Below, piece by piece: positions 2,467-52,600 of a stretch of DNA of 64,000 bases (position 1 is its first letter; every line of letters begins with the position of its first letter). Origin of the DNA: Diadema antillarum (taxonomy: Eukaryota); NCBI RefSeq assembly GCF_040938485.1, contig NW_027271595.1, positions 434,001 to 498,000 of the forward strand, given 5' to 3'. Made by a program: the position numbers and the translations under genes. The notes under the pieces are model-generated. The model was not told where the DNA came from. It searched no databases and was given only the letters and a program-made list of their open reading frames with translations.

Positions 2467-5400
2467 TCAAATTTTGTTGGCCAGGACCGGTTGGGAGTAG
2501 CGCCATCCATTTTGTAACTCTTGACTCAACTTCTTCACCAAGTCCTTATACTCGCTGTCATCTGCCACATTGTTGTCCTCCAGTGGGTCCACGCCTCTTA
2601 TGTAAAGCTCCCTTGCTTTCACGTCCGACCAATCAGCTTTGATCGTGGTGCCATTGAATCCGACCCATTCTGTGTAGTGGTAGTCTTCAGTCAGCATGGA
2701 ATAACCCATGACAGTGATGATCTCTAGGTTAGGCAGGTCTGTGTAGACACTCGGGGTCGTCCCTGGCCGGGGATACTGGCTGAAGGTAGCATTCTTCCAT
2801 CTGGAGAACTCTTGCTTGATCTCTTGTCTGCTGTGTGCCTTTACCAGGGGTGCAAAACTGTTCCCCTCTGCACAGAAGTCCACCTTGAATGGCTGTGGAG
2901 GGCAAACAGGTGGCACCTTCAGCCCAGCTAGCTCAGAAAGACTTGGAAACATGTCCACCAGTTCTACCAGCTCTTCGACCGCCACTCCAATATCACCCTT
3001 TAATTGTCTCTTTTGCTTTGTTGCAATTTTAGATGACAGCTTTGATTTCTCCCTTCTCTCCTTGGTAGCACGCTCAAAGGGGTCTCTAAGAGGGAATTTC
3101 CTCTTTGAACGCTGATAGTTTATGTCTGTCATCCCAGGAACGTGAACCATCAGAGGCACTCTTGTTGCCACTTCAAAGTTGGAATACTTGCACCATTCCC
3201 CATGCTCACCTAGTTGCCAACCTGTGAGATTGTTGACAGCATGTAATCATATAAATGCTGAAATATAGGAATACATTGCTCATGTTAATTAATATTTACA
3301 TCAAACTTGGTCGAAAATCTCTGTGCATCATGAGCCAAAGCCAACCAACGTGTAGAGAGTTATTTATATTGGGTGTCAGATCACTCTACACCAAGTGTAG
3401 AGCATATAGATCTGTGTAGATCTGTAATGTGTAGACACCAAGTGTAGATCTGTAATGCACATTTCTTGCCCATGGCTTTTGTGAGTATGAAAATGATGAT
3501 CATTTTGTTTCTCTTAGCTTGAAAAAGAAATGCTATTTACCTGCTGAAAAATTTCGGTACTGACATAATTTCATCAATACAAGTACACTCATACCGACAG
3601 CTTGGATTTTGGTTATTATCTAAAGATGCAATCACCTTTCACCAATAGGCAGTGAACTTTTGTCAAAGCTATAACTGTCACATACTTTGCCTTCTGAAAC
3701 TTTTGAGATAGCAAGTCAAAAATTCTTGGAGAGTTTCAATTTTGTCATGGTTTATTCCTTTATCCAGTCAAAGCCAATGTCTATACATTCCTTGATAGAC
3801 AGTCCCAGAAATGCAGAATTATACCTTCAACTTTGACCCACCCAATCCCTCTCAAACAGATAAGAATATCAAGATCATCATAACAAATTTTTCTGTGCTA
3901 TTACAGGTCCACACAACAACACTATTTATCAAAAAATACACCCACAAACAATGAGACATAAATTTGTAATACACACAAGTATATTGTGCATATGAAAAAC
4001 TTCAACTTGATGGCTTCAGTGTTACGTGAGAATTAAGAATGACAATGTCTGAGTGTTAATGTCATGCATAGAATCTCTAAAAGATATCATACTCTCTCAC
4101 CATGGTCTCCTACAAATGAGATGATGGTGTTGTTGGCAAATCCAGCCTCTTCCAGACCTTGGAGAACTCGGCCCAACTCGTAGTCAACGAAGGTTGATGC
4201 AGCATAATAACTCTGTCTCATCAAAGCCTGCACAGAGGCAGAAAAGAATAATTTATTGATGTTAAGATGGACACAGAAATGATATTCTTGTGCCGTCAGC
4301 AATGGCATTCCTGAGCAGTTAGAATTGTAAACTGTATGAAGCAATGCAAATGTGCATTTGTACTTAGATTTGACATCACAGAAACTGTCCTCTACTCGCA
4401 TGCCTCTATAACTCTCCTAAGATATAAGAAAATATTCCTCCCCCCAAAGAAAACAAAAAACAAAAAACAAAGACTAAATTATCTACACTATCAAATCGTG
4501 ACAACATCACTGTTTTTTTTCTTTCTTGTTCATGTTGAGAAGCATGTTTTGTGTGATATATCACCACAGTTGCTCACATGAAGTAGTGTTGAACTGCAGC
4601 CTATGGCTTATGGACAGCAGAGAACTGAGGCTGGCACTAGGGAGGACCACTCACATGATGGTCATCTGGAATGAGACCATACGGAAAGCTGAGGTTCATG
4701 GCTTTCATATCATCTCTCTGTCTGGCTGTAAAGAAGTCTTCCCAAGCCACGCTGGGCATTTTGGCTGGAATCTGCCTGTTGGGGGCGATCTCCACAGACT
4801 CCAGGGGATATAGGTCGCGGAACTCTTCAGGGTACTTCCAGTTCAGGTGTGGCTTCCTGAAGCCAACTGCCAGGAAGAAAGGCGAATCCCTGGTTGGTGA
4901 ATCTGGTGAGGAATTTTTCCTGTAAGAGTTCAAATGCTTATCATCAAATAAACCTGAATACACAAATAAAACTGTAGATACATGCATGATCATTAATACA
5001 TTATATGCTTTGTTCATTGTGCATGATAACATTTACATGACAAATTATTGCTCTGTCTTTTGTTACACATGAACAAACAATGAAACTCTTTGAATTTGTA
5101 TGAAAAACTTTTTTGGTGCTTTGTTAAATTCAATCTAATTTTTTTTTGTTGCAATCTCAAGTAAGTTTTAATGACTTAACACTTGATTTATCACAATAGC
5201 AGATAGTTCTACCAGCTATTCATATCATGCCAATTCAGCTTTTGTGAACACTGTTATACGTAAGTATTAGTGAGAGGGTGATGAACATTTTTAGCTGTAA
5301 AACAAGGAAAAGTAGAAATTACGCGGTGGGTAATATATGTCCCCGCCGGAAGTAGCATTTAGTAGCAAAAGGTACAATATAGGTAAAAAGATCAAGGTCA

Positions 5401-8400
5401 AAGGTCAAAGAAGTCAAAGGTCAAAATTCTGTGTAGAAGTTTTGAAGCCCTCACCTAGTGCCATCATATAAAGCAAACGGAATCAAAATCGGGTTAGAAA
5501 TGGCGAAGGAGTAGCATTTTGAAGCAAAATGTACAATATAGGTCAAAGGTCAAGGTCAAAGGTCACAACTGAAATTCTGTATAGAAGTTTCAAAGCTCCC
5601 ATGTAGTGCTATCATATAAAGCAAACAGAATCAAAATCGGGTTAGAAATGGCGAAGGAGTAGCATTTTGATCAATTTGATCACACACGGACGCACAGACG
5701 GACGGACGGACGCACGGACGGACGGACGGACAGACGGACGGACAGACGGACGGACACACACACGTACGGAGCCCGTTTCATAGTCCCCTGCTCGAACTCG
5801 TTCGGCGGGGACAATTAAGAGTGATAAAGAGAATGTTGGACCTCACCTGGCAGCAGACAAGTTAGCCAGGATCTCCAAGGCTCTCTCAGTGGTCTGAAGA
5901 TCTGGAAGGGAATGTTCAGGCATCCTGGACACGTTGACTGGACACACCACATTGTTGTGAAGTTTTCCATCTTCTGAGGGACACACCTATTATCAGACAA
6001 ATTAAAGGGCAATGATATTTGACCGCAATAATTACAGAGTGTTTGTTGTGCATTATTTATGTACATGTGCGTGCCTATGTGTGTGCATAAGGATTTACAG
6101 ATTAATAGGGACGAAAGATAGAACAGAGCACAAGTGTATCCTCAGATATAACCTACAACCATTTGTTTGCATCTTCTTCCTTGAATGATTATGAAACAAT
6201 GATCTAGTCTAATTCAAAACAAACAAACAAACAAAAAACAAACAAACAAACAAATAAACAAACAAACAAACATATGTGCATATATATCGCGGATTCAAAA
6301 ATAAATACATTTTATGTGTGGTTGCATTACTTTGTTTCATAAGTTCTTTATTATATAGCCTTCATTGGAAACATTTGCTTACCTTGGCATAAACATACTT
6401 CTCTGTAGAAGCATGATATGGAGGAATAGACCAGCTGTATGGGTAGTCATCTGTTCCATTAGAAGCTACACCTGAATTTCCAGTGAAATCAAAGGATATC
6501 TTGACATTCCACACACAGACACTGCATTGGACAATGCATCTTATAAAGTTATATTGCACTTAATGGATCAATAGCATGTATCTATGTGAAATTGAATTTT
6601 CAACAGAAATTAATAATGCTAGTTTGAAGCGTATGTGCTAGTAAAAACCATCTGAATGATTTGTTAACAGTGATAGATCTATAAAGAATCACTGCAATAA
6701 ATGACATGTGAAAGTCTATTGATACGATATGTAATTCATGAGCTATTAGTATCATCATAGACAACAGTGACGGATCATGGGGGAGTGCACCGGATGCCCC
6801 CTTTTATTTTTTGTTAAAACAAAACAAAACAAAACAAAAATGGGGGGGCATATGCACCTCCACTTTAATTTTGTAAAGGTGTCCCCCTCCCCCCTTTTAC
6901 AGAATTCCTGGAAACGCCCTTGTAGAAAGTAAGCTAAATTTGATAAGATGCATTATATCTTACAGACTTGGTATGGGGATACCATGCAATGGGAAAGCTA
7001 ATCTGACTCAAATATATTCAAGCATCCCAGGAATAAATTGTGAATAACTTTATCACTGATCTCTATGTAATTACACAAGTAGCCAAAGAACACCAATGAG
7101 AGTATGCTTCCATGCACATATTCATGAACAGGCAAGTCTATTCCAACAGGCCGACAATGGCCATGGTTTTTTAATGTACAGATATTCAGGGGGGCATTTC
7201 ATGAAGGAACTTGTCGGATAAAATATCAGACAAGTCAATTATATCCGACAAGTTTTGAGAAATTCTTTAGTCTGATTGGCTGATTTCTCTGAACTTGTCG
7301 GATATAAATGACTTGTCGGACATTTTATTCGACAAGTTCCTTCATGAAACGCCCCCCAGATGGCAGCGAAAGAAGACTGATTCAATCAGGCCAGCCTTAT
7401 CTCTCCACACTACAGAGATTTTAACCCATTGAGGACGGACTGATTTTGCTACAACAGGGATTTCCCATAGACACCTGTCTGAGTACACTTGGGACTCGTC
7501 CTCAATGGTTCAAGAGAAAAAGACTGATTCAATAAATTGGCAGAAAACTTTTGTGTTTCATTTGGTTTGGGATGTCTCTACTTAGAGAAGCACAGAAGAC
7601 AATTTTCAAAACATTGAGACTTTGATTTACATGTAGGTAGTCACAATCCATTTGTGACTGCTGACTATGTCCACATGCTGAATCTGAGTTTCGAAAACAA
7701 AAACAACAACAAAACCCTTCCTAGTTTAATAGTAAATATACCTGGATGAAAAACCTTGCCAACTGATGCAGTAAAGTAACCATTTTCCTTGAAGTGTTGA
7801 GGGAGAGTGGTGTAGTTTCCTGCGAAGGTTCTCCAGTAGAAGCCAAAGTCATAGAGTTTGGTTGTGTCTGGTCTGCGTCCTGTCAAAAATGAGATTCGGC
7901 TTGGGCCACAGACAGCTTGCTGAATTTAAAAAAAAAAAACCACCCAAATGAAAAATAATCAGTTTGACAACCGATATCTCATCACTGTGCATATCAGTTG
8001 CAATATGTATTTCCTGTGTACTGTAGGCCTATAATCCTACCTCCCCTCCCTCACCACCATAAAAAGAAAAATGACAATAAAAGAAAAAAATGCAGATCAA
8101 CAGACTGTATTCAAAAACTATGATCCACAAAAATCATGATAGACTTATTGTACATTGTATATACCCACCAATGCAAGTGGATTGAAAGTCAGCTTTTCTT
8201 TTTTTGTGTACAGAGAACTTTAATTTAGAGAAGCTTCCAAAGATCTTTATTTGATTGAGTGTGTGTTTGGGCATGCACTTCTTGACCTTCTGATTTAGTT
8301 CATCAAGCCATTTTTTTTTAACCTGCCTATGATGGAGATGCTGTAATGCAGACAATATTTTTGATAGAAATGAATAAATATCTTCACCCCAGTTATACAT

Positions 8401-9070
8401 GCAACACATTACCTGCACAAAGGCATTGTTGAAGACTGCAGATTGGGAAGCCAGTTGGTCAAGGTTTGGGGATATAATTGGACCACCATAGCAATTCAGC
8501 GATGCTCGTAGATCATCAGCAACTATGAACAGCACATTTGGTTTTGAGTTTGACGCTTCTCCTGGAAAAGCAATGAGAAACGTGTTTTAACCATTTTTGC
8601 AAGATTGGTTAACAAACTTTAACTTCCTTAATAAAAAAAACACCCTTGGTATATTGAAGCATGGTTGCAGCAGCTTACACAATGTCATGTCAAAGAAAAC
8701 ACTCTGTCTCTGTCATATGAAATATGGTGGAGTACAACGTATCTGAGCAGAGCAACTAATTCGACATTCTAGAGCACTGCAACTTTATTTAAAGACCAAG
8801 GGGGAAAAAAAGCAAATCTCACTTTCAATATCTCATCTGATGCTTTAATATACAACAAATTTCATCAATTTTACTAGGGTCTACACCAATTGTAGAAGTT
8901 CAGGACACCACCACAGCTCAGCCACACTGACATGACCACAATAGGGTAAAATTTACTGGTACATGTAGTTGATAGATGTGCAGGGGGCGGATCCAGGAAT
9001 TCGTGGTAAAGGGGGAAGGGGCGCAAAAAAAAAAAATTCTGGTGCCACTTCCAGGTTTAATCAGCTGACA

Positions 9071-9106
<36 letters not shown>

Positions 9107-9986
9107 AAAAGCCTCACATACTTTTTTTTTTGTTTTTTTTTTGTCACGCGTCATTCTTTTAACTTTGTGCCAATAATCCAAGGAAATACTCTTCTTCCTG
9201 GTGGTGAGCAACCACAAAACAACTAGGCCTAGATCTCAGCCCCATCTAGTTTGTGTCATGGTTTACTATTATGAGAACTAGATTTTCAATATGTCACTTT
9301 CAAATTTAAATTGTTGAATTGGATGTCTACGGGCCGGACGAATCAGTCAACATGGACTAAAAGGAGGTCGGCATATGTATATAAATTCATAAATAACCAT
9401 CAATCATAGCTAGTACTAGGTAGTAGAGACTAGAGTAGTAAACATGGTAAATAGTAGGCAGCACGGTCATTTCCTGTTCCCTGGTAGTTTGTGTCTTCCT
9501 AACCCCGTCGCGGGACGCGTTTTTTTTTAAAGACGGCACAGATTGGGGCATGGCGCGTGTTAAACCTATTTTATGGGAAAAACGTTGGGTTAGGGTTTTT
9601 GGTTATGGTTATGGTTAGGGTTAGGGTTAGGGTTAGGGTTTGATGGTTAGGGTTAGGATTAGGATTAGGGTTAGGTTTAGGGATAGGGTCCCCGATAGAT
9701 TTTTAGTTTCCCCAATCTGTGCCGTCTAAAAAAAACACGCTCGCGGGACGCTGTAACACAGTAACAGCCCGTATTTGTCCGTATGGGGTCGCTGCTGCGG
9801 TTAGTGTCTTCCATAATATTTGTCTTTGCCTTTATACTGCCTTGGCTTTTAAGTTTTATCTCATTTTGCCGAGGGTAAATGAATAAATAAATCGTTACCT
9901 CTCCTGGTAAGTAACAGTATGAAAGGAATGACGAAGTACTGGTATCTTGAAAGGATCATCCTGTCCCTGGTTGTGGCAGAAGACAT
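2467..9986 (-). CDS. IDS: Iduronate-2-sulfatase, copy A (8 coding exons)
   Basis: Exons 9986-9899 ([30 protein letters not shown]), 8561-8413 ([11 protein letters not shown]), 7919-7742 ([20 protein letters not shown], CxPxR formylglycine motif; GKVFH), 6471-6383, 5986-5847, 4919-4655 (KPH), 4227-4101 (GDH), 3221-2467 ([13 protein letters not shown]..stop). All introns are GT-AG with consistent phases. The 178/89/127-nt exons match human IDS exons 3/4/7. Exon 1 is the least certain. Confidence 0.93.
5300..5814 (-). mobile_element. HINE/pearl-like element, second family, in IDS-A intron 5
   Basis: 11-bp subterminal IR TGTCCCCGCCG (5338-5348) / CGGCGGGGACA (5803-5813); (GACG)n tract 5685-5760; ~150-bp core repeats; hairpin ATTAC..GTAAT at 5318-5334. 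Confidence 0.7.
7187..7359. mobile_element. Palindromic MITE
   Basis: ~30-bp TIR C(A/T)GGGGGGC(A/G)TTTCATGAAGGAACTTGTCG at both ends. Confidence 0.75.
7421..7513. mobile_element. piggyBac-like MITE
   Basis: TTAACCCATTGAGGACG...CGTCCTCAATGGTTCAA; reverse-oriented relative at 61789-61881 with TTAA at both ends. Confidence 0.65.
9517..9740. mobile_element. Mutator-like MITE carrying (TTAGGG)n-like repeats
   Basis: TIR GCGTTTTT..AGACGGCACAGATTGGGG / CCCCAATCTGTGCCGTCT..AAAACACGC; perfect 9-bp TSD TCGCGGGAC at 9508-9516 and 9741-9749; GGTTAG repeats at ~9587-9688. Confidence 0.8.
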
Positions 9987-10064
9987 TGTCCAGAGGAAGT
10001 GAAGCAAGAAGCTCAGCACTCAGCGAACGCACGTCGTTGCATCTTGGTTCGTGTTGCCAACGAT

Positions 10065-10122
10065 GTGTCACGTGACACTAGATGCATCATGTGACACGAA
10101 TCTGAGTACACTGTCACGTGAT
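10065..10122. promoter_or_regulatory. CLEAR/E-box cluster (MiT/TFE sites) between divergent IDS copies
   Basis: GTCACGTGAC 10067-10076 (inside the 14-bp palindrome GTGTCACGTGACAC), TCATGTGAC 10087-10095, GTCACGTGAT 10113-10122; ~80 nt upstream of the IDS-A ATG. Confidence 0.75.
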
Positions 10123-11820
10123 CGTACTCCTAGGTTCGGGCTGCAGCTACAGAGACAGAGGCGACGGTCCGGTCCGTGTTTGATAACTCCTTGGAAAGGT
10201 TGAAAGAAGGCACAGCTTGTGAGCCAGCCACCCACAGGGATCCGATCTGAAGGATGATATCACTAGTGGTGTCACTTCAGTCAGTAACTATCCGTTTACG
10301 TTTGGCGTTTCTACACAGCCCAACCGTTAAGTTCTAGAATCTAGTAAGTTTTAATTCCCACTCCCAGGCATGATTCCTCATGTAATTTTTTATGTTATCT
10401 CGTTATTTTCTAGCTCCCTTGACCAATTGATTGTTGACCGCCGTGTGCATTACTAAATTAGGTATGCAGCACTTAACTTAAAGTAATTTTAACCATTCCA
10501 AAATTTATCATGATTTATATTCAGTATTAAATTATTTGTGTAATGTTACATTGTCATTGTGCCATTGAATTGTCACATTGATGATGCAGAAATCCAGTGG
10601 GGGCAGTGGCAGTGAATTGACCTTACAAATTACAATGAATGCAAAACATTTCATTTCGATGATCAATGCAAACAAGAAGTTGTATACCGGTAAGCTGTTA
10701 TTTACGCTAGGGTTTAAATTTTGCGAATCACAGTGGGATCGCAAATTTAACAACATGGGAAAATGCCTCCATGCACTTTGTTGATACAGCATTAACGTAA
10801 GCATCAACGTCAGTTCGCGAAAACAACATCTCGGGAAATGTCTGCGACCAGGTCATTCGCAAAAATAACAGTGTATACAGTAGCTGACAAATGGAAGGTT
10901 GCACTGTTTGTAGGGCAGTTTAGAGTATGGTAACTAAAATTAGTTGGGAGGGCTGAGGGGGGATAAGGAAGTCTCAGATTTCCAGGAAGAGTGCCAGTAT
11001 TGTCCAGACCAAACAAAAAAAAAAGCGAGGGAAGGGAGGGGAAGTGTTAGTGCATTGATAATGACTAAAGGAGTGAGAATTTAATTAGATCTAATTATCA
11101 ATACCATTGCTTATAAATTTGATGATATAATTCTAACAGAAGTTCAAAATAATGAAGTCCCCAAAGATATATCAGAAAGAGTTGGTTTCCTTATGTCCCT
11201 CCACTTGTCTATACCACTAACCTATCCTTTTTAAATACAACTGTAGCTCACTCACAGATGCATGCACTCATAGTCCCACGCCATTGGAAAGTGGTGGGGT
11301 GGGGGAGGGGAGACATAAAGAAGGCTAATGTTTCAATGTGACACAGCAGAATTAATGGCAGTCAATGCATCATGTGACATGATCATGACTTATCCAGCAA
11401 ATTATTGTGTAATTGAAATAAGAACATGCAGAAAAGGTGACTAAAGAGGATGAAATCATATGGAAAAATTTTCCAAACAGCATGCCATTTAACCACATGA
11501 AATGGAGGGTGTAGAGAGCTTAATGCATTGGTTTCCCTGCGAGTGAATGCAAGAATCCCTATGACAGATGTTAGTTGGAACATGATTTGACATGGCCTGA
11601 CCTTTGCATTGCTAACAAATGGTGCTTCTGGTGATTTTGCAGCTCTGATTCATGAGTTTTACAGCCCAGGTCGGATCACTAGACTTACCCAGAGCCTATC
11701 AAGTGAACTGGAAATGGGACCCATGGTCATGAGTTGATGCTGATTGCTGAGTAAAGAAATTTAGTTGAGGAAACACCTTAATACTACTAGGCTGGTGGAC
11801 ACAGATGTAGCCGCCCCAGT

Positions 11821-23800: not shown

Positions 23801-24564
23801 GTAATTGTTTTGCAGGGTACCAACTAGGAGAGCACGGAGAATGGAGTAAGTGTTCCAACTTTGAAGTGGCAACGAGAGTGCCTCTAATAGTGCACGTTCC
23901 TGGGATGACCGACACAAAGTTTCCACAGTTAAAGGCTAAATTTCCTCTCAGAGATCCTTTCCAACAGGCTTCCAAGAACATAAAGGAGAAATCAAAGCCA
24001 ACATCTAAACTTCCAGTTGGTGCAAAGAGACGCTTAAAGGGTGATATTGGAGTGGCAGTTGAAGAGCTGGTAGAACTGGTGGACTTGTTTCCAAGTCTGT
24101 CTGAGCTGGCTGGGCTGAAGGTACCACCTGTTTGCCCTCCACAGCCATTCAAGGTGGACTTCTGTGCAGAGGGGAACAGTTTTGCACCCCTGGTAAAGGC
24201 ACACAGCAGACAAGAGATCAAGCAAGAGTTTTCCAGATGGAAGAATGCTACCTTCAGCCAGTATCCCCGGCCAGGGACGACCCCGAGCGTCTACACAGAC
24301 CTGCCTAACCTAGAGATCATCACTGTCATGGGTTATTCCATGCTGACTGAAGACTACCACTACACAGAATGGGTCGGATTCAACGGCACCACGATCAAAG
24401 CTGATTGGTCGGATGTGAAAGCGAGGGAGCTTTACATCAGAGGCGTGGACCCACTGGAGGACAACAATGTGGCAGATGAAAGCGAGTATAAGGACTTGGT
24501 GCTGAAGTTGAGTCAAGAGTTACAAAATGGATGGCGCTACTCCCAGCCTGTCATGGCCAACTGA
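11821..24564 (+). CDS. IDS: Iduronate-2-sulfatase, copy B (8 coding exons)
   Basis: Exons 11821-11878 ([20 protein letters not shown], signal peptide), 12483-12625, 13324-13501 (VCGPSR), 15057-15145, 21345-21484, 21860-22124, 23306-23432, 23816-24564. All GT-AG with the same phases as copy A; no stops or frameshifts; AATAAA at 24657-24662. Confidence 0.93.
13524..14460 (-). mobile_element. 5'-truncated L2/CR1-group LINE (C-terminal ORF2 plus 3' tail)
   Basis: ORF 14453-13728 with [35 protein letters not shown]; 3' end AAGCGCTTTG..GAAAAAGCGCTATATAAAT then (TAT)n. Confidence 0.85.
15186..16325 (-). mobile_element. 5'-truncated CR1/L2-group LINE, second family
   Basis: ORF 16319-15906 ([28 protein letters not shown]); AATAAA then a (TTGAA)n tail at 15186-15230. 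Confidence 0.75.
16442..17583 (-). mobile_element. hAT-like non-autonomous element with internal ~167-bp minisatellite (copy 1)
   Basis: 8-bp TSD CTATCGTA at 16434-16441 and 17584-17591; termini CAGGCGCGCCGGAAG..CCTATG; reverse complement of 19195-20709; N-gap inside. Confidence 0.85.
17691..19063 (+). mobile_element. HINE-like element, third family, with ~330-bp tandem cores
   Basis: 5' GCTCACCTGAGCCAAAGGCTCAAGTGAGC hairpin; 3' CTCAGGTGAGC subterminal IR (19031-19041) plus short stem-loop; T-rich flanks; about four core repeats. Confidence 0.75.
19195..20709 (+). mobile_element. hAT-like non-autonomous element with internal ~167-bp minisatellite (copy 2)
   Basis: 8-bp TSD GGTACTAG at 19187-19194 and 20710-20717; TIR CATAGGCGCCGGAAG / CTTCCGGCGCGCCTG (12/15 match). 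Confidence 0.88.
22173..22320. mobile_element. Small TIR element with degenerate (CCCTAA)n interior
   Basis: AGGGCAATTACCCC ... GGGGTAATTGCCCT enclosing CCTAACCCTAACCCTAA-type repeats. Confidence 0.6.
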
Positions 24565-38200: not shown

Positions 38201-41200
38201 TGATGGTCGATTTGTCTGATGATGCCTTGCTTCTCCATTGAGTCAAGCTCAGCCTTGAGTTTGTCTTTGATGTGGACGCTGCACTTTCTTGGTGCATCAA
38301 TGGTGGGGACAGCTCCTTCTTTGACATGTAGTGTTGCTTCTCCACGAAAGTTACCAATACGATCAAACTGTTGCGGATAGAGCACTTGCAGGTCCTTGAC
38401 AGATTTCAACGGAGACGGTCTGTTAGTTGGACTACGACTCTGAGGGTGCATCTCATGGATTGTTACCACGTGTAACTCACTGCACATAGGTAGTCCAATT
38501 ATCACTGGTCCTGAGACATCGACCACGTAGAAAAGTTGATCTCTCCACTCGGAGTCTTTGTACTTGCACGTGATCTGAAGGGTGCCCAAACAATGTATCG
38601 GGGAACCGTTGTATGCGGTAAGACGTGCTGAAGTCGGGTGTACAACTGCTTGCCACCTGCTTCCATACATGGCCTTGATTGTCCGTAGAGGGAGTGTATT
38701 TCCACTCGCTCCGGTATCGACCTTTGCATGTAAGATGTGTTGTCCACGTTTGCTGGGACAGATGATTCCAATCTTCACGAATGCTTCTTTCTGATGCACA
38801 GAATCGATAGATGCGTCTAGGTCGTTTCCCAGTATGATAGTGTTAAATTCCTCAAAATCTTCCTGGGTTTCTCCTTCTGGCTCTTTGGAGAACTCGGCTA
38901 CCTTTTGTTTGGTTGGCTGCCTGGTGGGTGTCTTCTGTCTTCGTGGTGAAAAACTGCGGTTACCACCTTGGCGTCCTCTGCTTGGACTTCGTCCTCGAAG
39001 CACTTTTCCGTGTTTTGTCTTTCTGCAGCATTTAGCCCAGTGTCCTTTGGAACCACATGCTTTGCAAATGTCTCTGTAGGCTGGACACTTTCGTGGTGGA
39101 TGATTCAAATCACAGTTACCACACTTCTTGCGTCTATCTTGGTTATGTGATAGAGCATCTACGTTGCTTGCAGAGGACTCGATCGAACGAAGACACTGTT
39201 TGCCTACGGCTATGGCTTCGTATTTCCTGCCTTCATCAAGGAGGTTTGCTATCTTGTAGCCTTTGGTTTGGTCTAGAAGATCTTTCTGGAACGCCTCAAT
39301 AGGTGTAGACGCAATGACTAGCTCTGTCACGCGTTCTGAGAGCTCATTTTCGGTAAAGTCACACTCTTTGGCTTTACTCCGGCATCTATTTACAAATTCG
39401 TCGATAGTTTCATTTGCGTGTTGACGATATCGCATCAGCTCCAGTCTGTGGATGCGAAAATTCAGCTTGACTTTCAGCTGACCTTCAAGAGTAGACCACA
39501 ACATTGCAGGTTTTTCTTGATCCTCATTGGATAGACCGGATGCGTTAATTCTACGCAAACCTTCATTTCCTACTGCAAGTTTGATTTTGATTGCTTGCTT
39601 CTTTGGGTCTTGGACATCGTTGTCTTGGAAGTATAACTCCATGCGTTGTTTGAATAACTTGAATTCTTCCGGCACATCAGCACTATTCCAATTCATTTCT
39701 GGATACTTTGCCATCGTGCGTTTTGATTTAGATTGAGTTGGAGATACAAATGATACAATGCTTGATATTAATGTCACACTTTGCAAACTTACGGCTGAAA
39801 GGTTACAGATATAGTTTACAAAGTAAACAAATCAAGAATAGTTTGCAAACATAGAAATATATGACACAAAGTCACTACTGATATACATGTATCAATAATG
39901 TACACTCTCCATGAATATGCCCTTAGAATGATAGTACACTTGCCCAGTACTTTAAGTAATTCTATGTTGAAATATGCTGCTCCTGACTTTCGTACTATAG
40001 CTCTATGGTATGCCTGTACCTGTGGGGATAGGGTTTAGGGTTGGGGTTGGAGTTAGAACATGAATGTGAGTCCTATCAATGCCCCTACAGTTCATATAGA
40101 AAGGGTTGAGATAGGGGTAACCGAAAAAGAGACCCTAACAAGTATGTGTTACTGGTTACAGCGCCCCACAACTCCTACAAGGGGGTTGAGATAGGGGTTT
40201 AATAGTTAGGGTTTTTCTCTGACTGAAGTGAGTTGATCGAGGGTACAAAATGATAACTTTTTTGTATGTGTTTTAACTGTTATACGCACGTTGGGGATGG
40301 GGCAAGGGGGGTGGGGGCAGATGAGCCAAAGACAAAAACAACAATAACAATAACAACAGGTTGTGTGTAGACAGTATACCAAATACTGTATACGCTGTTA
40401 TTTTCGCGAATGACGAGGTCATAGACATTTTCGCGAGATGTAATTGATTTCGCGAATTGACGCCAATGCTTACGTTATAAATGCTCTAACACAGCACATG
40501 GAGTCATTTTCGCGTGTTGTTAAATTCGCGATCCAACTGTGATTCGCGAAATTCGTGAAAATTAAACCCTCCGAAAATAACAGCTTATACAGTAAAAGTT
40601 AGTAACGTTAATCGTTAGATACGATTCCGATAATATTCGAGTGTGACACTGAGAGTGGTAGCAATATGAAATAGAGCCAATCGTGATCATGTTGTTGTCA
40701 ACTGTTGACTTGCCAAGTAATGATGTGAACATCCCTTTGTAAAATGCCAGCAATCCTTCCTCCCTGAGAATAAGTCTGAATGCGTGAACGATTCCCTTGT
40801 ATCTTCTCCTCTGACGATCGGTAGGCTGCACAATCAACCTTGTTTTTACCATGTCTGTTGGGTAAGTCACTATCGTCGCAGTCATCCCGCCGAGAGCTCC
40901 AGCAAGCATCGCTCCCGACGCAGTCAGACGACCGGTGTCGTCTGCTAGCAACACCTTGCACTTAGAAAATGCCATGAACTGGACGGCACTAAATGGACTC
41001 AGTCGCAAACAGCCGATAAGATTTCCTTTCCAAAATGCTCTGACTCCGTGTGAGGTGTAAATGTTGGCAAACGATCGCAAGAAACCTTGCTGAAGAGTCT
41101 CTTTCGAGCCTACTTGCATCCGAATTTTCACGACATCAAGGGGCGATGTGAACGTGCGACTGGTTAACCCGGCTACAGCGCCGCATGACAAATTCTGAAG

Positions 41201-41236
41201 ATAGGTAAGCCGACTGTCTCTACCCCCTCGAACCAT
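32240..41236 (-). CDS. SLC25A43: Mitochondrial carrier SLC25A43 (4 exons, ~332 aa)
   Basis: Exons 41236-40714 (MVRGGRDSRLT..PLDVVKIRMQ, PTDMVKTRL), 34125-33953 (PFDTVRKKLQ), 33291-33157, 32407-32240 (YENGYTISP..GVDQSMKPGEL). Three Px[DE]xx[KR]x[KR] carrier motifs; total 999 nt in frame; intron 1 uses a GCAAGT donor. Confidence 0.92.
34193..34579. mobile_element. Kolobok-like MITE
   Basis: TTAA|AGGG(T)A(T)GTACA..CTGGTTGAGGTG ... CACCTCAACCAGTACTGTACAGTCCCT|TTAA. Confidence 0.75.
34620..34811 (-). repeat. 3' LTR of the Gypsy element
   Basis: Starts TGTTGTG immediately after the polypurine tract and ends TTACAACA. Confidence 0.75.
35677..39714 (-). CDS. Gag-Pol polyprotein (1345 aa from ATG 39714)
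   Basis: Zn knuckles CGNC..H..C and CKACGSKGHWAKC; protease VDTGA; RT LPFGL and IADD; RNase H VDAS/TDHKPL; integrase H..H..C..C, DLF, SDNGPQF, SNGLAER; no stops. Confidence 0.95.
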   Translation of the reverse strand: MAKYPEMNWNSADVPEEFKLFKQRMELYFQDNDVQDPKKQAIKIKLAVGNEGLRRINASGLSNEDQEKPAMLWSTLEGQLKVKLNFRIHRLELMRYRQHANETIDEFVNRCRSKAKECDFTENELSERVTELVIASTPIEAFQKDLLDQTKGYKIANLLDEGRKYEAIAVGKQCLRSIESSASNVDALSHNQDRRKKCGNCDLNHPPRKCPAYRDICKACGSKGHWAKCCRKTKHGKVLRGRSPSRGRQGGNRSFSPRRQKTPTRQPTKQKVAEFSKEPEGETQEDFEEFNTIILGNDLDASIDSVHQKEAFVKIGIICPSKRGQHILHAKVDTGASGNTLPLRTIKAMYGSRWQAVVHPTSARLTAYNGSPIHCLGTLQITCKYKDSEWRDQLFYVVDVSGPVIIGLPMCSELHVVTIHEMHPQSRSPTNRPSPLKSVKDLQVLYPQQFDRIGNFRGEATLHVKEGAVPTIDAPRKCSVHIKDKLKAELDSMEKQGIIRQIDHHTDWCSSITTVLKKDGSLRVCLDPRRLNQNLKRCPHKIPTLEEVNPAFSGAKYFSKLDAKSGYWSVHLSKESQELTTFRTPFGRYCYTRLPFGLSVSQDLFQQHMDRIVGQVDGCICIADDIAVVGRTEAEHDKNLHRLMEVAQREGLVFNSKKCIIKTDSINFFGSVYTRDGIRPDPQKIEDIHAMPTPQDKEDLQKCLGLLNYLAPHIANFSEKASPLRELLKRDVPFTWQDDHQHAFNELKKAISAESCLQYYDPRKTTILEVDASSKGLGACLMQEGKPVAFASKSLSSSQANYSNIERETLALVFGIQRFHTYLFGNQFTVQTDHKPLEMITRKPLRCAPPRLQRLLIKIQGYDYDVKYKPGKSMIISDALSRMPNPSKNQDVPLDVNVEEICEEIDISQIDLIFFGQKKRNELQQETSRDPTLRALWQIVTNGWPDTIKEVPREVRTFWPYRDEIGVSDGVLFKGNQVIIPTDLRQDILNQLHQGHQGIERTRRLARETVYWPNINKDIEQISKNCYACQENQVKQQREPLQPHDIPTSPWTKLGTDLFTFNKEEYLLVTDYHSKYPIVRKLTDTSSAAVANILSGIFSLFGPPATLISDNGPQFVGRPFQEMCEKWSIDHITSSPRYPRSNGLAERMVQTVKGIMTKCTRTGQDIQTALLHFRATPIDSNLPSPAELLFGRPIRTTLPSHHLTKQSSTPDLLFQRQENMKHNHDLHGGRDLPPLHVGQKVRVLNPKDNTWLPAEVSKVRQEPRSYEVATPNGSILRRNRSHLREMPTGTKPTVPKRVHFEDDDRSEERRQHPDRRQRQSDRKSVSTRYITRYGREVRPPSRYQE
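40386..40592. mobile_element. TA-flanked MITE
   Basis: TA|CTGTATACGCTGTTATTTTCG..CGAAAATAACAGCTTATACAG|TA. Confidence 0.75.
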
Positions 41237-46688: not shown

Positions 46689-49600
46689 GGGGAGAGATTG
46701 AAGGAGAGCAATTGCACAAATATAGATATGCTGAAATGTTCTATTTGTTTTTATCATTAGACAGCTGTCACAAAGTCATAGGATTCGATGACAATTTTCC
46801 ATTTTATTTCGTGAGTTTACGCAAGAACTCACAGTGAGAGAGCCCGCTCAACGCGCGCGCAGTCATATCGCTTCTTCGCACGTTTTGCACGAGGGGCTAA
46901 GTTCCCTCATCGCAGTCTAAATCCAGTTTTATTCGTCCTTTTAACTGTGCATCTTCGCAATATCTTATCATATTGTGGATTGTTATTATTTATAGCTCAG
47001 TTAGAGCTGACTTTGCTTCGGAAGTGGATTTTTATTCACGAGATATCGCGGGATGGAAATTCCGCTTTCCGCTCCCCCACAGCATACAGCTAAGCCTGTC
47101 GTGGGTGGCACCACTAGTACGAGCGCCCTGCATACAGCTAAGTCTGTCGTGGCGATGGTGACTACAGCCGTGCATCATGAACCCAAGTGTTCGCCGGCTA
47201 GTATTAAGGCTCCAACAAAGAAAGAAGGGAATGGGAAAACCCTTAAAAAACCCACCAAACCGGGCCTAAGTAAGAAGGCAGCCCCCCCTAAAGAGAAGAC
47301 GGACGCGGAGGTGCTTTCCCGCCTTTCTAAACTCGAATCCATGTTTGAAAAGGTCATGGATATACTGCCGTCTCAGCCTACTCGTATCCAACAACAGCAA
47401 CTACGTGCCGGCCATGTTGGCACGGCTTGTACCGCAGAAAACCACGGTGGTGTGCCGTTTGGGGGCATGGATGTGTGTGCTACAGACGATAGTACGCAAG
47501 CACGCGGTACGCTGCACGACGACCACGGCGGCAGCAGCTACAGTGGGGATGAATGCGATTTCCCTGCGGCGGCAGCGGGTTACGCACCCGCAGAGCTCAC
47601 GGGGCAGCCAGTACAAGTGCCATCCTTTGCTGCAAAATTTGCGGTCTCCGCCTGTGTGGGCGACCCTATCAATGACGAATTGGCAAATTCTACAAATTAT
47701 CTCATCTCCCATTGTCTGGAGGAAAAATCTATGGAAGAGTCAGCGGCAAACTACCCAGCACCGAGCAATTGCCCCAACTTACTAGTCCCTAAAGTCAATC
47801 CAGTGATTTGGGATAATGTGACACAGACTACGCGCAGCAGAGACGTTAAGCTGCAGAGAGTACAGAAATCTCTTACCCGCGGGCTGTGTGCGTTCCTACA
47901 AACTCTTCCTACTGACTTGAACGAGGCGCAACAGGACGCACTCGCTTTACTCTGTAATGCCAATTACGAGATGAATTGCCTGAGAAAGGAGCTGATCAAG
48001 CCCGATATGAACGCTGCTTACGCACATCTGTGCAAGCCTACTACGCCCGTGACCGCGTTTCTATTCGGTGATGACTTGGGACAACGTGTAAAAGATCTCA
48101 AGGAGGAGAATAGGGCTGCCTTTAGTGTGGTTAAAGGCCAGGCTAAGAGATCTACTCATCAGCCGTACCACCCATACAAGCGCACGGCCAGCGGTGGATT
48201 CAGCCGGAAGCAATATCGGAGCGCAGGCTGGCTCGCAGCTGGCGATACATCCAGGCCTTTTTTAGGCCAGCAGCAGCGGGGATACAGACATTCAGCCCCG
48301 CACACGCAGACTCGCCCACCTCCAGCTCATGCGCACAACCGGGGGCAGAGCTACTCGACAGCAACCCCAGCCAAGCCAAACACTGTGTCACGGAGAAAGT
48401 AACTGCACTACCCAAGGAGGTAAGTTGCAGGCCTAGCTCTTGTTGTGGAAATACACAATCTACTCACACTGTACAGTCAGTTTTTGACATTGAACATGTA
48501 GATGTTCCATTAGACCTGCCCGTTGGGGGTCGATTGAGGCATTTTAGCAAACAGTGGAATCATATTACCACTGATCCTTTCATACTTGATGCAATTAGCG
48601 GTTACAAACTTGAATTTCAAGAGGCGTATAGCCCACCTCACAGAGGTAAACCGCCTTACCACTACAGAGTGGGTAATGCTGAGGAGAGCAAGATTGACAT
48701 TGAAATTCGAAAACTGGCCGAGAAAGGCGTAATCGAAGAATGCCAGCATGTGGCTGGAGAATTTGTGTCCAATATCTTTACACGCCCAAAGAAAAATGGG
48801 GACATACGCCTAATTTTAGATTTATCGGACCTCAATGACAGTCTGAATGTACAGCATTTCAAAATGGATAACATCCATACGGCTACAACCCTAATTTCCC
48901 CTGGTTGTTACCTTGCCTCAATCGACCTTCGAGATGCCTACTACTCTGTCCCTGTTCACCCCTCATATCGCAAGTATTTGAGATTTGTCTGGCACGAGAA
49001 ATGTTGGCAATTTAAGGTACTCCCCAATGGCCTTAGTACAGCGCCTAGGCTCTTCACAAAGCTTATGAAGCCGGTGTTCGCAAAGCTGCGACAGGCAGGC
49101 CACCTGGTTGTGGGGTATTTAGATGACACTCTCATAATCGGTGAAACTGAATCACAAGCACTAGAAGCGGTGCAAGCAACCACAAAACTGCTCTCTGACC
49201 TTGGTTTTGTCATTCATTCAGAGAAATCCATCCTAGAGCCTCAGCAACGGCTCCAATTTTTGGGGTTTATCTTGGATTCGGAAAGCATGACTATAACGCT
49301 CCCGCATGAGAAATGTCAAAATATCAGGGCAGTATGTGCGGAATTGCTAGGGAAACAAAACCCTACTATCAGGCAGGTGGCGCAGGTCATTGGGAAACTG
49401 ATTGCTACTTTCCCTGCTATTCAATATGGCCCCCTCTTCTATCGTAACCTAGAAAGAGACAAAATTCTTGCACTAAAATCAAGCAAAGGGCATTTTGATC
49501 GACCTATGAATTTGTCTGAAGCTTCTAAACAGGAGTTAATGTGGTGGTTCAATAACATTCACTGCCAGTCGGCACCAATTAGTCGAGATCGGCCAGCTTT

Positions 49601-52600
49601 AGAGCTACGTACTGACGCCAGTGGGCAAGGATGGGGTGCCACTGATTTAAGCAGTGAAACTGGCGGTAGATGGGATGATCAGGAGATAGTGCATGCTCTA
49701 AACAATGAAATCAACTATCTTGAAATCTTAGCTGCAGGGCTTGGTTTGAAGTCATTTTGCGGCCACCTGCATGATACACATGTGCTCATTAGAACTGACA
49801 ACACAACAGCTGTAGCCTACCTGAACAATATGGGAGGCATTAAATCTCGAGCCTGCGACAGGGCAGCACGAGACATTTGGGTTTGGTGTAAGGAAAGGAA
49901 TATCTGGATCACAGCAGCCTATTTACCAGGTCGTGACAATACAGAAGCAGACAGGAGATCTCGTCATTTTAATGACAGAACAGAATGGATGCTGAATAAG
50001 AAAGTTTTTACTGATATCACTAAGAAATGTGGTACTCCCCAAATTGATCTTTTCGCGTCCAGACTCAATAAGCAGCTGCCTGCGTACGTTACGTGGCTGC
50101 CTGACCCAGATGCGGTTTCTGTGGATGCATTCACTCTGAATTGGGGTGATCTGTATTTCTACGCATTCCCTCCTTTCTGCCTCATCCCCAAATGTCTCCA
50201 AAAAATAGAAAACGACAAGGCACATGGTCTCTTGATTGTCCCAAACTGGCCTACGCAAGCGTGGTTTCCTCGCATGAGGAGAATGCTTAAAGATGAACCA
50301 CTCTTAATTCCTAGACACAGGAATTTGATTACGCAACCAGTATCTGGGGAACCGCACCCTTTACACGCTTGCCTTGATCTGTTATGTTGCAGGTTTTGAA
50401 GCTGCCGTTCGAGAACTCTGGCATGAGCAGCAGAACGGTGGACATCTTGGCAGCATCTTGGAGGGCATCAACCCAAAGACAATATTGTACATATATAAGG
50501 AAATGGAGAAAGTTTTGTACACTTAAGAAGGAAAGTCACCTTCATGCCAAGATTAATTTTGTTTGGAGTTTTTTACACACATGTTTTATGAAGAGAACTT
50601 GAGCTATTCAGCTATTAACTCAGCACGGAGTGCACTTGCTACCTTTCTAGTGTTAGAGGATGAACAATTTACTGTCAGCACTCATCCGCTTCTCTCTCGT
50701 TTTATGAGAGGTGTGTTCCAGCTCAGGCCCCCAAGGCCGCGGTATTCGGAAATTTGGGACGTGAATATTGTTTTTAGATATTTGAGAAGTCTAGCTCCCG
50801 CTAACTCGCTTAGCTTGAAGCAATTAACGATGAAGCTGTGCATGTTACTGGCCTTGATATCCACCCAGAGGGTACAGACTTTGCATTGCCTGAATCTAGA
50901 CAGCATGATTCTCAAACAATCTATGGTGTCATTCAAAGTTAATGAACATCTTAAGCAGTCTAGACCTGGGAATTTTGGATTGGACGTACTTTTGAAAGCG
51001 TACCCCCCAGACAGACGTTTGTGTGTAGTTACATACATTAAGGCCTACCTTCGGAGAACCAAAGAGATCCGAGGAGAGGAAAGTCATCTCTTCATTAGTT
51101 TTCGCAAGCCTTTCAAGAGAGTAACGGCACAGACAATTTCTCGATGGATCAAAGAAATCATGACTGGCGCTGGCATTGACACCACAATGTTCAGTGCACA
51201 TTCAACCCGAGCAGCATCTAGCTCAGCAGCAAACAGGGCGGATGCACCTATTCCTCTGATCCTCGCAAAAGCAGGCTGGTCAAAAGAACGAACATTCCGT
51301 AAATTCTACGACAAACCTCTACAAGAAGAGGGACAGTGCCTGTCACAACTCATTGTGAGGGAATAATGGCCTCAGACCAAGGTAATTTGAGCTTACATTT
51401 TGCTTGCCATTGTGCATGCTTGAGTTTGTTCAGTTGGAACAAATGTGACTTCTGTGCTACAAAATCTCACTGTGAGTTCTTGCGTAAACTCACGAAATAA
51501 AATAGAAAGATTAAACGAGAACTTACCTGTTTGAAGTTTGATCTTTATTTTATGAGGGAGTTGGAGAAAGAATTCACAGTCCCTCCTCTCCCTTCCCATG
51601 GCATGAATACTATTACAAAATGTATAGATCAACTTCAAGTAAGTTCTCAATCTTTCCACTCTGACAGAAGTCACATCTTGTTGCTACGAAGTATGACTGC
51701 GCGCGCGTTGAGCGGGCTCTCTCACTGTGAATTCTTTCTCCAACTCCCTCATAAAATAAAGATCAAACTTCAAACAGGTAAGTTCTCGTTTAATCTCTCT
51801 ATTATGCTCTGTACACTCGGTTGTACCCAAGCTCTGTGATAACCAGCAGTTAGTTTATGTAGGGACTTCATCCAATAAAATTCATCCCAGTTCTCTAGAC
51901 ATCTCTATCATCTGTGTCTGATCTGTTGCCCCTCCTTCAGAACTTGTTTTCTTGTGGTAGAGTGGTGCTGCTTTTCACCAATGAGGAGGACATTGTGCTG
52001 GAGGAAGCTGGACAGATCTTTGATGTAGAGACCCAGGAGCGACGGCCGTGTGATGTCAAAGTTGTGACCGATGTCGGTGATTTCACCAGAAATGTTCTGA
52101 TGTTCAGAATCAGATCTACGATGAGCATGAAGTGCCACTACCAACAAAAGACAGGTATGATCATGCTGCTCTAACAGCAGGTGGGATTGTTGATATTGCA
52201 TTGAAGTATCATTGTATTTCTCCTTTTTTTTGGGGGGGGGGGGGGTAGGTGTGGTGGGGAACTTTCTTTCTGTTAGGAATACTTTAAGATCATTACTGTG
52301 TGCTAAATTTAGAAGGAAATATGAAATATATATGGTGTGAATTATATATTTTGTTTAAATACCTGATGATCATTTGTGTAAGATAAAAGTGATTGATTAT
52401 TAACCGCAAATTGTAAAGTTTGAGCCCTGACCTGTAAGACATTTAAATATATCTTTTCATGTGACATTATATGCAGATGCTATACATGGGCTGAGATTTG
52501 GTATTTCTTTGGGACAGGAATTAACTAAGGGCTGTCTGACATGCCACTTATGGGAAATCATGCCTTTCAACAATGTGATTCTACAGAGCCTTGGATGAAC

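Follow-up and report, generated by a model that had tools for sequence, protein, structure and literature searches.

Probable exon-confined gene conversion between two old, inverted iduronate-2-sulfatase-like genes of the sea urchin Diadema antillarum

Two head-to-head IDS-like genes

The 64,000-nt stretch of DNA analysed here (C707:434001-498000; hereafter the window) belongs to the 1.75-Gb genome assembly of the sea urchin Diadema antillarum and carries near its start two iduronate-2-sulfatase (IDS)-type genes, A and B, that are arranged head to head. The original prediction, drawn from the sequence of this stretch, had been that A and B are intact paralogues whose exons are kept nearly identical by exon-restricted gene conversion between the arms of an inverted repeat of ~22 kb, although their introns can no longer be aligned. 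When the first 30 kb of the window were compared with themselves, we obtained seven inverted matches with no similarity between them, and these matches are the exons of the two genes. The proposed inverted repeat hence exists as a set of exon-sized inverted islands; a continuous 22-kb repeat was not found in this comparison. The two genes are organized as follows:

2467-9986, minus strand: gene A, IDS-like, eight coding exons
9899-9986, 8413-8561, 7742-7919 and 6383-6471, minus strand: exons 1-4 of gene A
5847-5986, 4655-4919, 4101-4227 and 2467-3221, minus strand: exons 5-7 and the last exon of gene A
9987-11820: spacer of 1.8 kb between the two start codons, colinear with Diadema setosum
11821-24564, plus strand: gene B, the inverted paralogue of A, eight coding exons
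11821-11878, 12483-12625, 13324-13501 and 15057-15145, plus strand: exons 1-4 of gene B
21345-21484, 21860-22124, 23306-23432 and 23816-24564, plus strand: exons 5-7 and the last exon of gene B

All splice junctions of A and B are of the GT-AG type, all reading frames are open and the catalytic motifs are present; since this holds for two haplotypes and two species, the claim that both genes are intact was borne out. Exons were searched and compared singly rather than as a joined spliced model, and site-pattern counts were summed over exons instead of building a joined-exon tree. Single exons of gene A match the human IDS structures 5FQL/6IOZ (exon 3, E=1e-27; exon 6, E=1e-23; last exon, E=2e-36), single-exon Pfam matches to Sulfatase and SGSH_C are weak, and the NCBI name for both gene models is 'iduronate 2-sulfatase-like'. 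Each gene contains the formylglycine motif CGPSR (C-x-P-S-R). In the alignment to human IDS, A and B alike read 31 protein letters (not shown) plus GEHGEW.K, and the metal-binding or catalytic residues found in both comprise DD (exon 2), K..H (exon 3), the second H of HKPH, DH (exon 7) and the K of EWxKY; these motif residues were assigned with what we take to be the human IDS numbering. The exon lengths of 178, 89 and 127 nt and their phases fit human IDS exons 3, 4 and 7 at the sizes that we assume for the latter; presumably, relative to the human gene, A and B have a shifted intron 5 and lack a counterpart of human intron 8. On these sequence features, A and B qualify as probable genes of the iduronate-2-sulfatase family (type I sulfatase, PF00884, with an IDS/SGSH-like C-terminal subdomain).

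The first exons were found as signal-peptide-like open reading frames (ORFs) with phase-1 donors that lie within islands conserved in a related species. The peptide encoded by exon 1 of B is the N-terminus of the NCBI model P0239, whose printed last-exon region matches as well, and that of exon 1 of A is the N-terminus of P0125, the NCBI model of the allele, save for a 3-nt deletion in the allelic haplotig. The summed exon lengths correspond to 596 residues for A and 582 for B; P0125 has 595 residues and P0239 has 582. The spacer between the start codons (9987-11820) is presumed to be a bidirectional promoter region and contains a high-copy repeat at ~10640-10835. An alternative first exon in P0235, the NCBI model of haplotig B, maps to 10051-10203 (+), ~80 nt from the start codon of A, and lacks a signal peptide; it probably serves as a 5'-UTR exon within a bidirectional promoter that is very compact.

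Exon by exon, at identities of 90-99%, the two genes form a mosaic of near-identical and diverged segments. The numbers of differences predicted for four exons were reproduced: one in the common 135 nt of exon 2 (whose first 14 nt add two substitutions and a 6-nt indel), 5/178 in exon 3, 2/89 in exon 4 and 3/127 in exon 7. Exons 5 and 6 differ at 4/140 and 20/265 positions, respectively. The last exon, which had been called similarly close, is so from nt 285 to nt 686 (~97.5% identity), but neither at its end nor over its first ~284 nt, which are ~78% identical with heavy protein change. Similarity indeed ceases within a few nt of the splice sites for exons 2, 3, 4 and 7, and at the stop codon; this does not extend to exon 5, where it reaches ~30 nt into the flanks on either side, nor to exon 6, past which a weaker similarity fades over 50-100 nt. 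Synonymous divergence (dS) between A and B is 0.04-0.25 for individual exons and 0.65-1.3 in codons 1-50 of the last exon. The two contrasting parts of the last exon are located as follows:

2938-3221 (gene A, minus strand) and 23816-24099 (B partner): divergent 5' part, spanning the GWxLGEHGEWxKY motif and a basic loop
2536-2937 (gene A, minus strand) and 24100-24501 (B partner): homogenised middle (nt 285-686)

The uneven distribution of differences was supported statistically. The longest identical run measures 107 nt and lies in the last exon (permutation, P=0.0008; P=0.0095 across all exons), and synonymous differences are concentrated in codons 1-50 of this exon relative to the rest (P=1.6e-7). 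Third codon positions are richer in G+C in the homogenised part of the last exon (0.60) than in its divergent start (0.41-0.45), but the other homogenised exons span 0.31-0.62. A donor for the divergent start was sought among the other IDS paralogues and none was found; the loops of A and B resemble only each other, which argues that the start of the last exon represents divergence that escaped homogenisation, and not an imported segment. The differences in exon 6 were polarised with the older paralogues P1-P4 (62-68% protein identity) without an informative result, and no donor for the private states of A was found among them.

Within the divergent start, B reads 12 protein letters (not shown) at 23818-23856, at the position where A (3181-3219) and human IDS read W...KY. 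B changes W to Y and Y to C near this last motif, and the B gene of D. setosum does the same. Because the changes are common to the B genes of both species, they must be old, fixed and protected from conversion; they may mark functional divergence.

Ages of introns and exons

Introns of A and B were compared after 15-20 nt had been trimmed at every splice site, and introns with runs of N were either skipped or compared with the Ns dropped. For introns 2, 3, 4, 6 and 7, no similarity beyond that of shuffled or reversed sequence was detected between A and B in any combination of alleles (z < 2.5), so that for these five the proposed saturation is roughly right. Intron 5 departs from this picture. 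In the allele that lacks a repeat insertion, A and B show colinear homology (~70% identity in aligned columns; z 6-11), making it the sole intron with residual homology between the paralogues (A 4920-5846, minus strand; B partner 21485-21859). This residual homology and that in the flanks of exons 5 and 6 point to a common origin of the introns, which are very old, and indicate that exchange acts on DNA. The repeat in intron 5 of A (~530 nt, ~5298-5829) has at least 40 genome copies at 95-97% identity and is absent from both the allelic haplotig and D. setosum, and is thus a recent insertion that is still polymorphic. Apart from this element and two short stretches of intron 3, the introns of A match only themselves and the haplotig; since they are mostly single copy, repeats are not the reason for the failure to align.

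Could the pair nevertheless be young, its introns having been scrambled quickly by repeats and indels? The overall pS (the proportion of synonymous differences) of the exons is just 0.15 (0.09 without the divergent parts), intron lengths differ strongly, and some insertions are specific to one haplotype: intron 5 of A measures 927 nt versus 369 nt in its allele, and introns 3 and 4 of B measure 1555 and 6199 nt versus 604 and 1507 nt. Pairs of comparable synonymous divergence within this genome speak against such scrambling. The whole region has a colinear second haplotype in C1325, 86-99.6% identical over megablast-aligned blocks with introns included, and contigs of the source individual carry both alleles at similar depth. 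The C707 and C1325 alleles have a pS of 0.04-0.09; for A, the value is 0.089, introns 2-4, 6 and 7 are 87-99% identical, and intron 5 is ~75% identical across the repeat insertion. The tandem neighbours P3 and P4 have a pS of 0.085, and their exons and introns align at 82-90%. At their own pS, the introns of A and B should hence still align; instead, they do not, although those of A are mostly single copy. Along A, allelic divergence shifts sharply between 6500-9500 (introns 2-3, 98.6-99.4% identity) and 2467-6500 (introns 4-7, 75-94%). In exon 6 of A, the allelic pS is 0.23; the alleles of B are nearly identical in the 3' half of the gene (last exon, 100%).

The D. setosum locus was decisive. 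The 90% protein cluster that holds A and B includes two D. setosum proteins, whose genes lie 1.5 kb from each other on a single chromosome-scale record, in head-to-head orientation. This locus (L019) is colinear with the window throughout: the body, introns and 3' flank of A match one gene and those of B match the other. Each gene has the exon sizes of its orthologue, down to the 6-nt differences that distinguish the paralogues in exon 2 and at the last exon's end. Between orthologues, introns 2-7 could be aligned at 73-87% identity along much or nearly all of the shorter partner, whereas no BLASTN hit was obtained in 24 of 24 paralogous comparisons of introns 2-7 within or between the species. 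Public sequencing runs also contain contigs of a second labelled species, and these agree with the D. setosum picture. Because D. setosum has the same pair, with alignable orthologous and unalignable paralogous introns, the inverted duplication clearly predates the split between D. antillarum and D. setosum. In both species, the start of the last exon has a paralogue pS of 0.38-0.53, which a young pair would not have. We consider a recent duplication hardly tenable and reject it as contradicted by the D. setosum locus; the claim of an old duplication is upheld.

The same data bear on the quality of the assembly. Haplotigs might have been scaffolded in inverted order, or polishing might have copied exon sequence across the paralogues. 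The assembly contains uncollapsed haplotigs (C1325, C1348), de Bruijn contigs break or cross at the common exon 2, and gene B contains three N gaps, none of which touches an exon:

14829-14966: N gap in intron 3 of B
16507-16635 and 20506-20644: N gaps in intron 4 of B
16442-20709: insertion of 4.27 kb in intron 4 of B, flanked by inverted repeats

Across these gaps, exons 3, 4 and 5 of B have the same order and orientation in the gap-free haplotig C1325 and in D. setosum, and C1325 also shares the architecture, exon sizes and paralogue-specific indels. The same layout recurs in the independent chromosome-scale assembly of D. setosum and in contigs of an independent D. antillarum sample (X2). 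Read on each of the two D. antillarum haplotypes, A and B show 85 fixed differences that hold for all four sequences, and haplotypes of one locus would have alignable introns. Given the concordance of C1325, D. setosum and the X2 contigs, we rejected an artefact, to which we give next to no credence. The second and third gaps lie at mirror positions, 65 nt inside either end of the 4.27-kb insertion, which is part of a ~5.8-kb stretch of intron 4 of B opposite ~0.5 kb in C1325. This insertion has terminal inverted repeats of ~1.1-1.5 kb, which enclose a 330-nt tandem array (17781-18884) and are themselves made up in part of tandem units 160-165 nt long. A Pfam search of two reverse-transcriptase-like ORFs in B introns yielded no match.

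For a quantitative comparison between the species, the exon sequence was divided into two partitions: one homogenised (exon 2 from nt 15, exons 3, 4, 5 and 7, exon 6 nt 1-160 and last exon nt 285-686) and one divergent (the remaining exon sequence).

Homogenised, 1231 nt: paralogues of the same species 2.7%, 3.3% and 3.8%; orthologues 3.6% and 3.6%; non-orthologues between species 3.5% and 3.7%; informative quartet sites (species:paralogue:crossed) 6:2:2
Divergent, 460 nt: paralogues of the same species 15-17%; orthologues 4.9-6.1%; non-orthologues between species 15-17%; informative quartet sites (species:paralogue:crossed) 0:46:0

The ratio of paralogue to orthologue distance is ~0.9 in the homogenised and ~3 in the divergent partition (Fisher P=1.8e-7), and such a ratio cancels differences in constraint. 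In the homogenised part, dS between paralogues is 0.10 in D. antillarum and 0.14 in D. setosum, and that between orthologues is 0.13-0.15. The homogenisation of synonymous sites that had been proposed therefore stands for 1231 nt, and does not for the 460 nt that escaped or for exon 1. The last exon displays both conditions. In its codons 1-50, the paralogue pS is 0.53 (D. antillarum) and 0.38 (D. setosum) versus 0.16 and 0.27 for the orthologues, and sites of the paralogue pattern cluster in its divergent 5' part, which contains zero sites of the species pattern. In the homogenised middle (codons 96-228), the paralogue pS is 0.09 versus 0.08-0.15 for the orthologues, with one informative site of the paralogue and two of the species pattern. 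The same coding segments have escaped homogenisation in both species.

An old pair might also keep similar exons without any exchange if purifying selection acted strongly on them, synonymous sites included, through splicing enhancers, codon usage or mRNA structure. Nonsynonymous divergence (dN) in the homogenised exons is indeed very low (0.006-0.011), and exons 2 and 3 are the best conserved ones among the older paralogues as well. However, constraint should lower the distances between paralogues and between orthologues in proportion, instead of producing ratios of ~0.9 and ~3, and the orthologue dS of the homogenised exons is an ordinary one. Neither can constraint yield the polymorphisms common to A and B on a haplotype, or an exon 4 that is closer between paralogues than between alleles, both of which are described below. 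We thus judge constraint alone to be a very unlikely explanation.

Groupings by species, which had been expected for converted exons, were clear for exon 4 alone; the other homogenised parts show a star-like pattern and no clean species clade. The distances date the last common ancestor of the homogenised parts to about the separation of the two species, or to a later time, whereas introns and divergent exon parts are several times older. Orthologue dS is 0.13-0.18, compared with an intron divergence (K) of roughly 0.15-0.33, and the unconverted parts suggest a duplication about 2-5 times older than the species split.

Probable exchange between A and B

When the two D. antillarum haplotypes are considered together, three sites are common to A and B by haplotype, in that A equals B on each haplotype and the haplotypes differ (exon 4 nt 53 and 56; exon 6 nt 25). 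Coincident mutation would be expected to give 0.07 such sites (P=5e-5). These common polymorphisms point to recent conversion, of which the 89-nt island of exon 4 bears the clearest sign (A 6383-6471, minus strand; B partner 15057-15145): A differs there from B at two positions, from its own allele at five and from its orthologue at eight, and B differs from its orthologue at five. In exon 6 (nt 29-161), A of the haplotig equals both B alleles at eight sites where A of the window differs. This pattern fits a polymorphic conversion tract; private mutation is also possible, as the A haplotypes are deeply diverged there.

We regard it as highly probable that these observations reflect interlocus gene conversion at the DNA level between old inverted duplicates, the reach of which has shrunk to exon-sized islands of homology. 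According to this proposal, the A/B pair would have arisen by an inverted duplication long before the lineages of D. antillarum and D. setosum parted, and short-tract interlocus (ectopic) conversion would repeatedly have copied sequence between the two genes ever since. Such conversion would require local homology. Purifying selection would have kept the exons free of indels and largely alike, as introns, untranslated regions and exon 1 gained indels and repeat insertions. Since conversion needs homology and selection preserves the exons, convertible homology would have been reduced to exon islands, within which synonymous sites stay homogenised as the rest drifts apart until it can no longer be aligned. 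Segments that changed in their protein sequence, namely both ends of the last exon, the start of exon 2 and exon 6 in its 3' part, would have left the exchange in both species and would record the true age of the pair. What the data show directly is the mosaic, its age relative to speciation and the common polymorphisms; how the exchange works at the molecular level, how long its tracts are and what part selection plays are inferred.

The exchange might alternatively be templated by the spliced RNA or cDNA of the partner gene. This would suit the borders, since for exons 2, 3, 4 and 7 similarity stops within a few nt of the splice sites, and for the last exon at the stop codon, and it would explain how islands of 89 nt are still homogenised, since a spliced template would provide ~1.7 kb of continuous homology. 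Equally sharp borders are, however, predicted by erosion of homology up to the edges of constrained exons. Tracts that cross exon junctions would delete introns, but six introns have been kept at identical positions in both genes and both species. Moreover, the graded similarity in the flanks of exons 5 and 6 and in intron 5 is homology at the DNA level, and homogenisation has spared exon 1 and the initial 14 nt of exon 2 though both are part of the mRNA. An RNA template is therefore improbable in our view, to about the same strong degree as constraint without exchange.

A further proposal, which we consider unlikely though less so, is that the exchange is partly templated by spliced RNA, or that a recurrent 'flip-flop' inversion also has its breakpoints in the common exons and exchanges promoters, first exons and 5' introns between the two genes. 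If such an inversion occurred, Diadema populations would harbour a polymorphism as to which gene body is driven by which 5' end. One low-depth contig of 772 nt from sample X2 joins the upstream flank of B, exon 2 and intron 2 of A (8311-8547 + 11955-12490). Such a junction is expected from an inversion at exon 2, of which this contig would be the first trace; mis-joining in the de Bruijn graph at 3-6x depth explains it equally well. C707, C1325 and D. setosum are all colinear across A and B.

Several points weigh against DNA-level conversion as we propose it. The partitions were drawn after the D. antillarum data had been seen, so that only the D. setosum pair tests them independently; this pair taken alone retains the contrast (3.8% in the homogenised versus 15.2% in the divergent partition; Fisher P=0.007). 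Restricted to synonymous sites, the ratio test has a modest outcome (P=0.025), and the excess of species-pattern over paralogue-pattern sites in the homogenised partition (6 to 2) is not significant. The evidence for recent conversion consists of three sites on the two haplotypes of one individual, and much of the homogenisation could date from around speciation instead of being ongoing. Finally, an 89-nt island without flanking homology requires very short conversion tracts, which are plausible.

The IDS array, neighbouring elements and known systems

A and B are part of a larger family. IDS has expanded to at least seven genes plus a fragment (C707:372979-458561 and 656745-657404): P1-P4 and A, which share one structure, form a minus-strand tandem of five genes, and besides them there are a stray fragment of a last exon, B in inverted orientation and a further copy 200 kb downstream. 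The array is lineage-specific, with the A/B pair closing it. The members with individual coordinates are these:

C707:391641-397619, minus strand: P2
C707:404859-410626, minus strand: P3
C707:416143-416691: isolated last-exon fragment between P3 and P4, 98.8% identical to P4 and 96.5% to P3
C707:420188-428392, minus strand: P4

The last exons of the other array members are 52-60% identical to that of A, and of the five D. antillarum IDS clusters examined, four take in D. setosum proteins at the 90% level. P3 and P4 are a younger tandem duplicate. P2 and P3 are 92% and 89% identical in exons 2 and 3 and 68-70% identical in the other exons; this may reflect older exon-limited conversion at the 5' end of the family genes, or only stronger constraint. 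With at least seven paralogues, divergence in substrate among the IDS copies is possible.

Further features of the window lie apart from the exons of A and B:

9587-9689: interstitial telomere-like (GGGTTA)n array of ~100 nt in intron 1 of A, within a stretch of very high read depth (9464-9855)
35677-39786, minus strand: open gag-protease-RT-integrase ORF of 1369 residues (RT, reverse transcriptase), Ty3/Gypsy-like retrotransposon, classed by eye from its translation
40562-41236, minus strand: mitochondrial-carrier-like exon
47053-51366, plus strand: three-ORF element (gag-like, RT/RNase H, tyrosine-recombinase-like) that resembles DIRS, classed by eye from the translations
62105-62593, plus strand: exon resembling UFM1-specific peptidase, running into the N gap 62112-62266

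Interlocus gene conversion confined to exon islands is a known process, and the pair described here opens no new kind of biology. In humans, IDS and its inverted partial copy IDS2/IDSP1 recombine in Hunter syndrome; the partner is a truncated pseudogene and the outcome a pathogenic rearrangement. The Diadema pair belongs to the same enzyme family and likewise has an inverted neighbouring copy with exon-level homology able to support conversion and inversion. In contrast to the human case, both of its copies are complete, conserved in two species and under purifying selection, and they close an array of at least seven genes. The suggestion that the same architecture arose independently holds as far as the origins go, which are independent; the parallel itself is an analogy only. 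The Amy genes of Drosophila melanogaster are also inverted duplicates, with concerted evolution limited to the coding region and diverged flanks. Amy has essentially no intron mosaic, whereas the effect in Diadema operates exon by exon across six introns.

Among mammalian duplicates, BMP8A/B (inverted), DDX19A/B and TUBG1/2 have undergone long-lasting concerted evolution, as seen from paralogue versus orthologue similarity (PMC2720389). Like the Diadema genes, these are old duplicates, one of them inverted, that are in part concerted and in part divergent. Their converted tracts span exons and the intervening introns at >97% identity (PMC2720389), whereas the introns between the converted exons of Diadema are not homogenised, so that the Diadema pair is a more extreme, exon-only form of these long-lived pairs. 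It also holds a warning for dating: judged by coding sequence, the duplication would seem about as old as the species split, but its introns and unconverted exon parts reveal that it is clearly older.

The closest counterpart is the HMA4 triplicate of Arabidopsis halleri, in which exons, synonymous sites included, are homogenised, introns escape and the copies share polymorphisms; this has been explained, and modelled, by conversion that depends on local similarity together with purifying selection on exons (bioRxiv 10.1101/2025.10.29.685298). Homogenised exons, introns with an age signal, common polymorphisms and the explanation itself are common to HMA4 and the Diadema pair. HMA4, however, consists of direct repeats in which escape is limited to long introns (over 1 kb) that are ~5-6% different. 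The Diadema genes are inverted, every intron from 370 nt up has escaped, five of the six beyond detection, and coding parts have escaped too. The pair hence illustrates, in nature and with unusual clarity, the end state to which local-similarity-dependent conversion is predicted to lead: six introns have escaped fully or almost fully, exons of 89 nt are still exchanged, and coding parts have left the exchange at the same places in two species. With two haplotypes and the sister-species locus assembled, it could serve to determine the tract length of ectopic conversion in an echinoderm and the least homology that this needs, and it could show which protein changes, such as the Y/C changes in the GWxLGEHGEWxKY motif and those in the basic loop, are protected from homogenisation.

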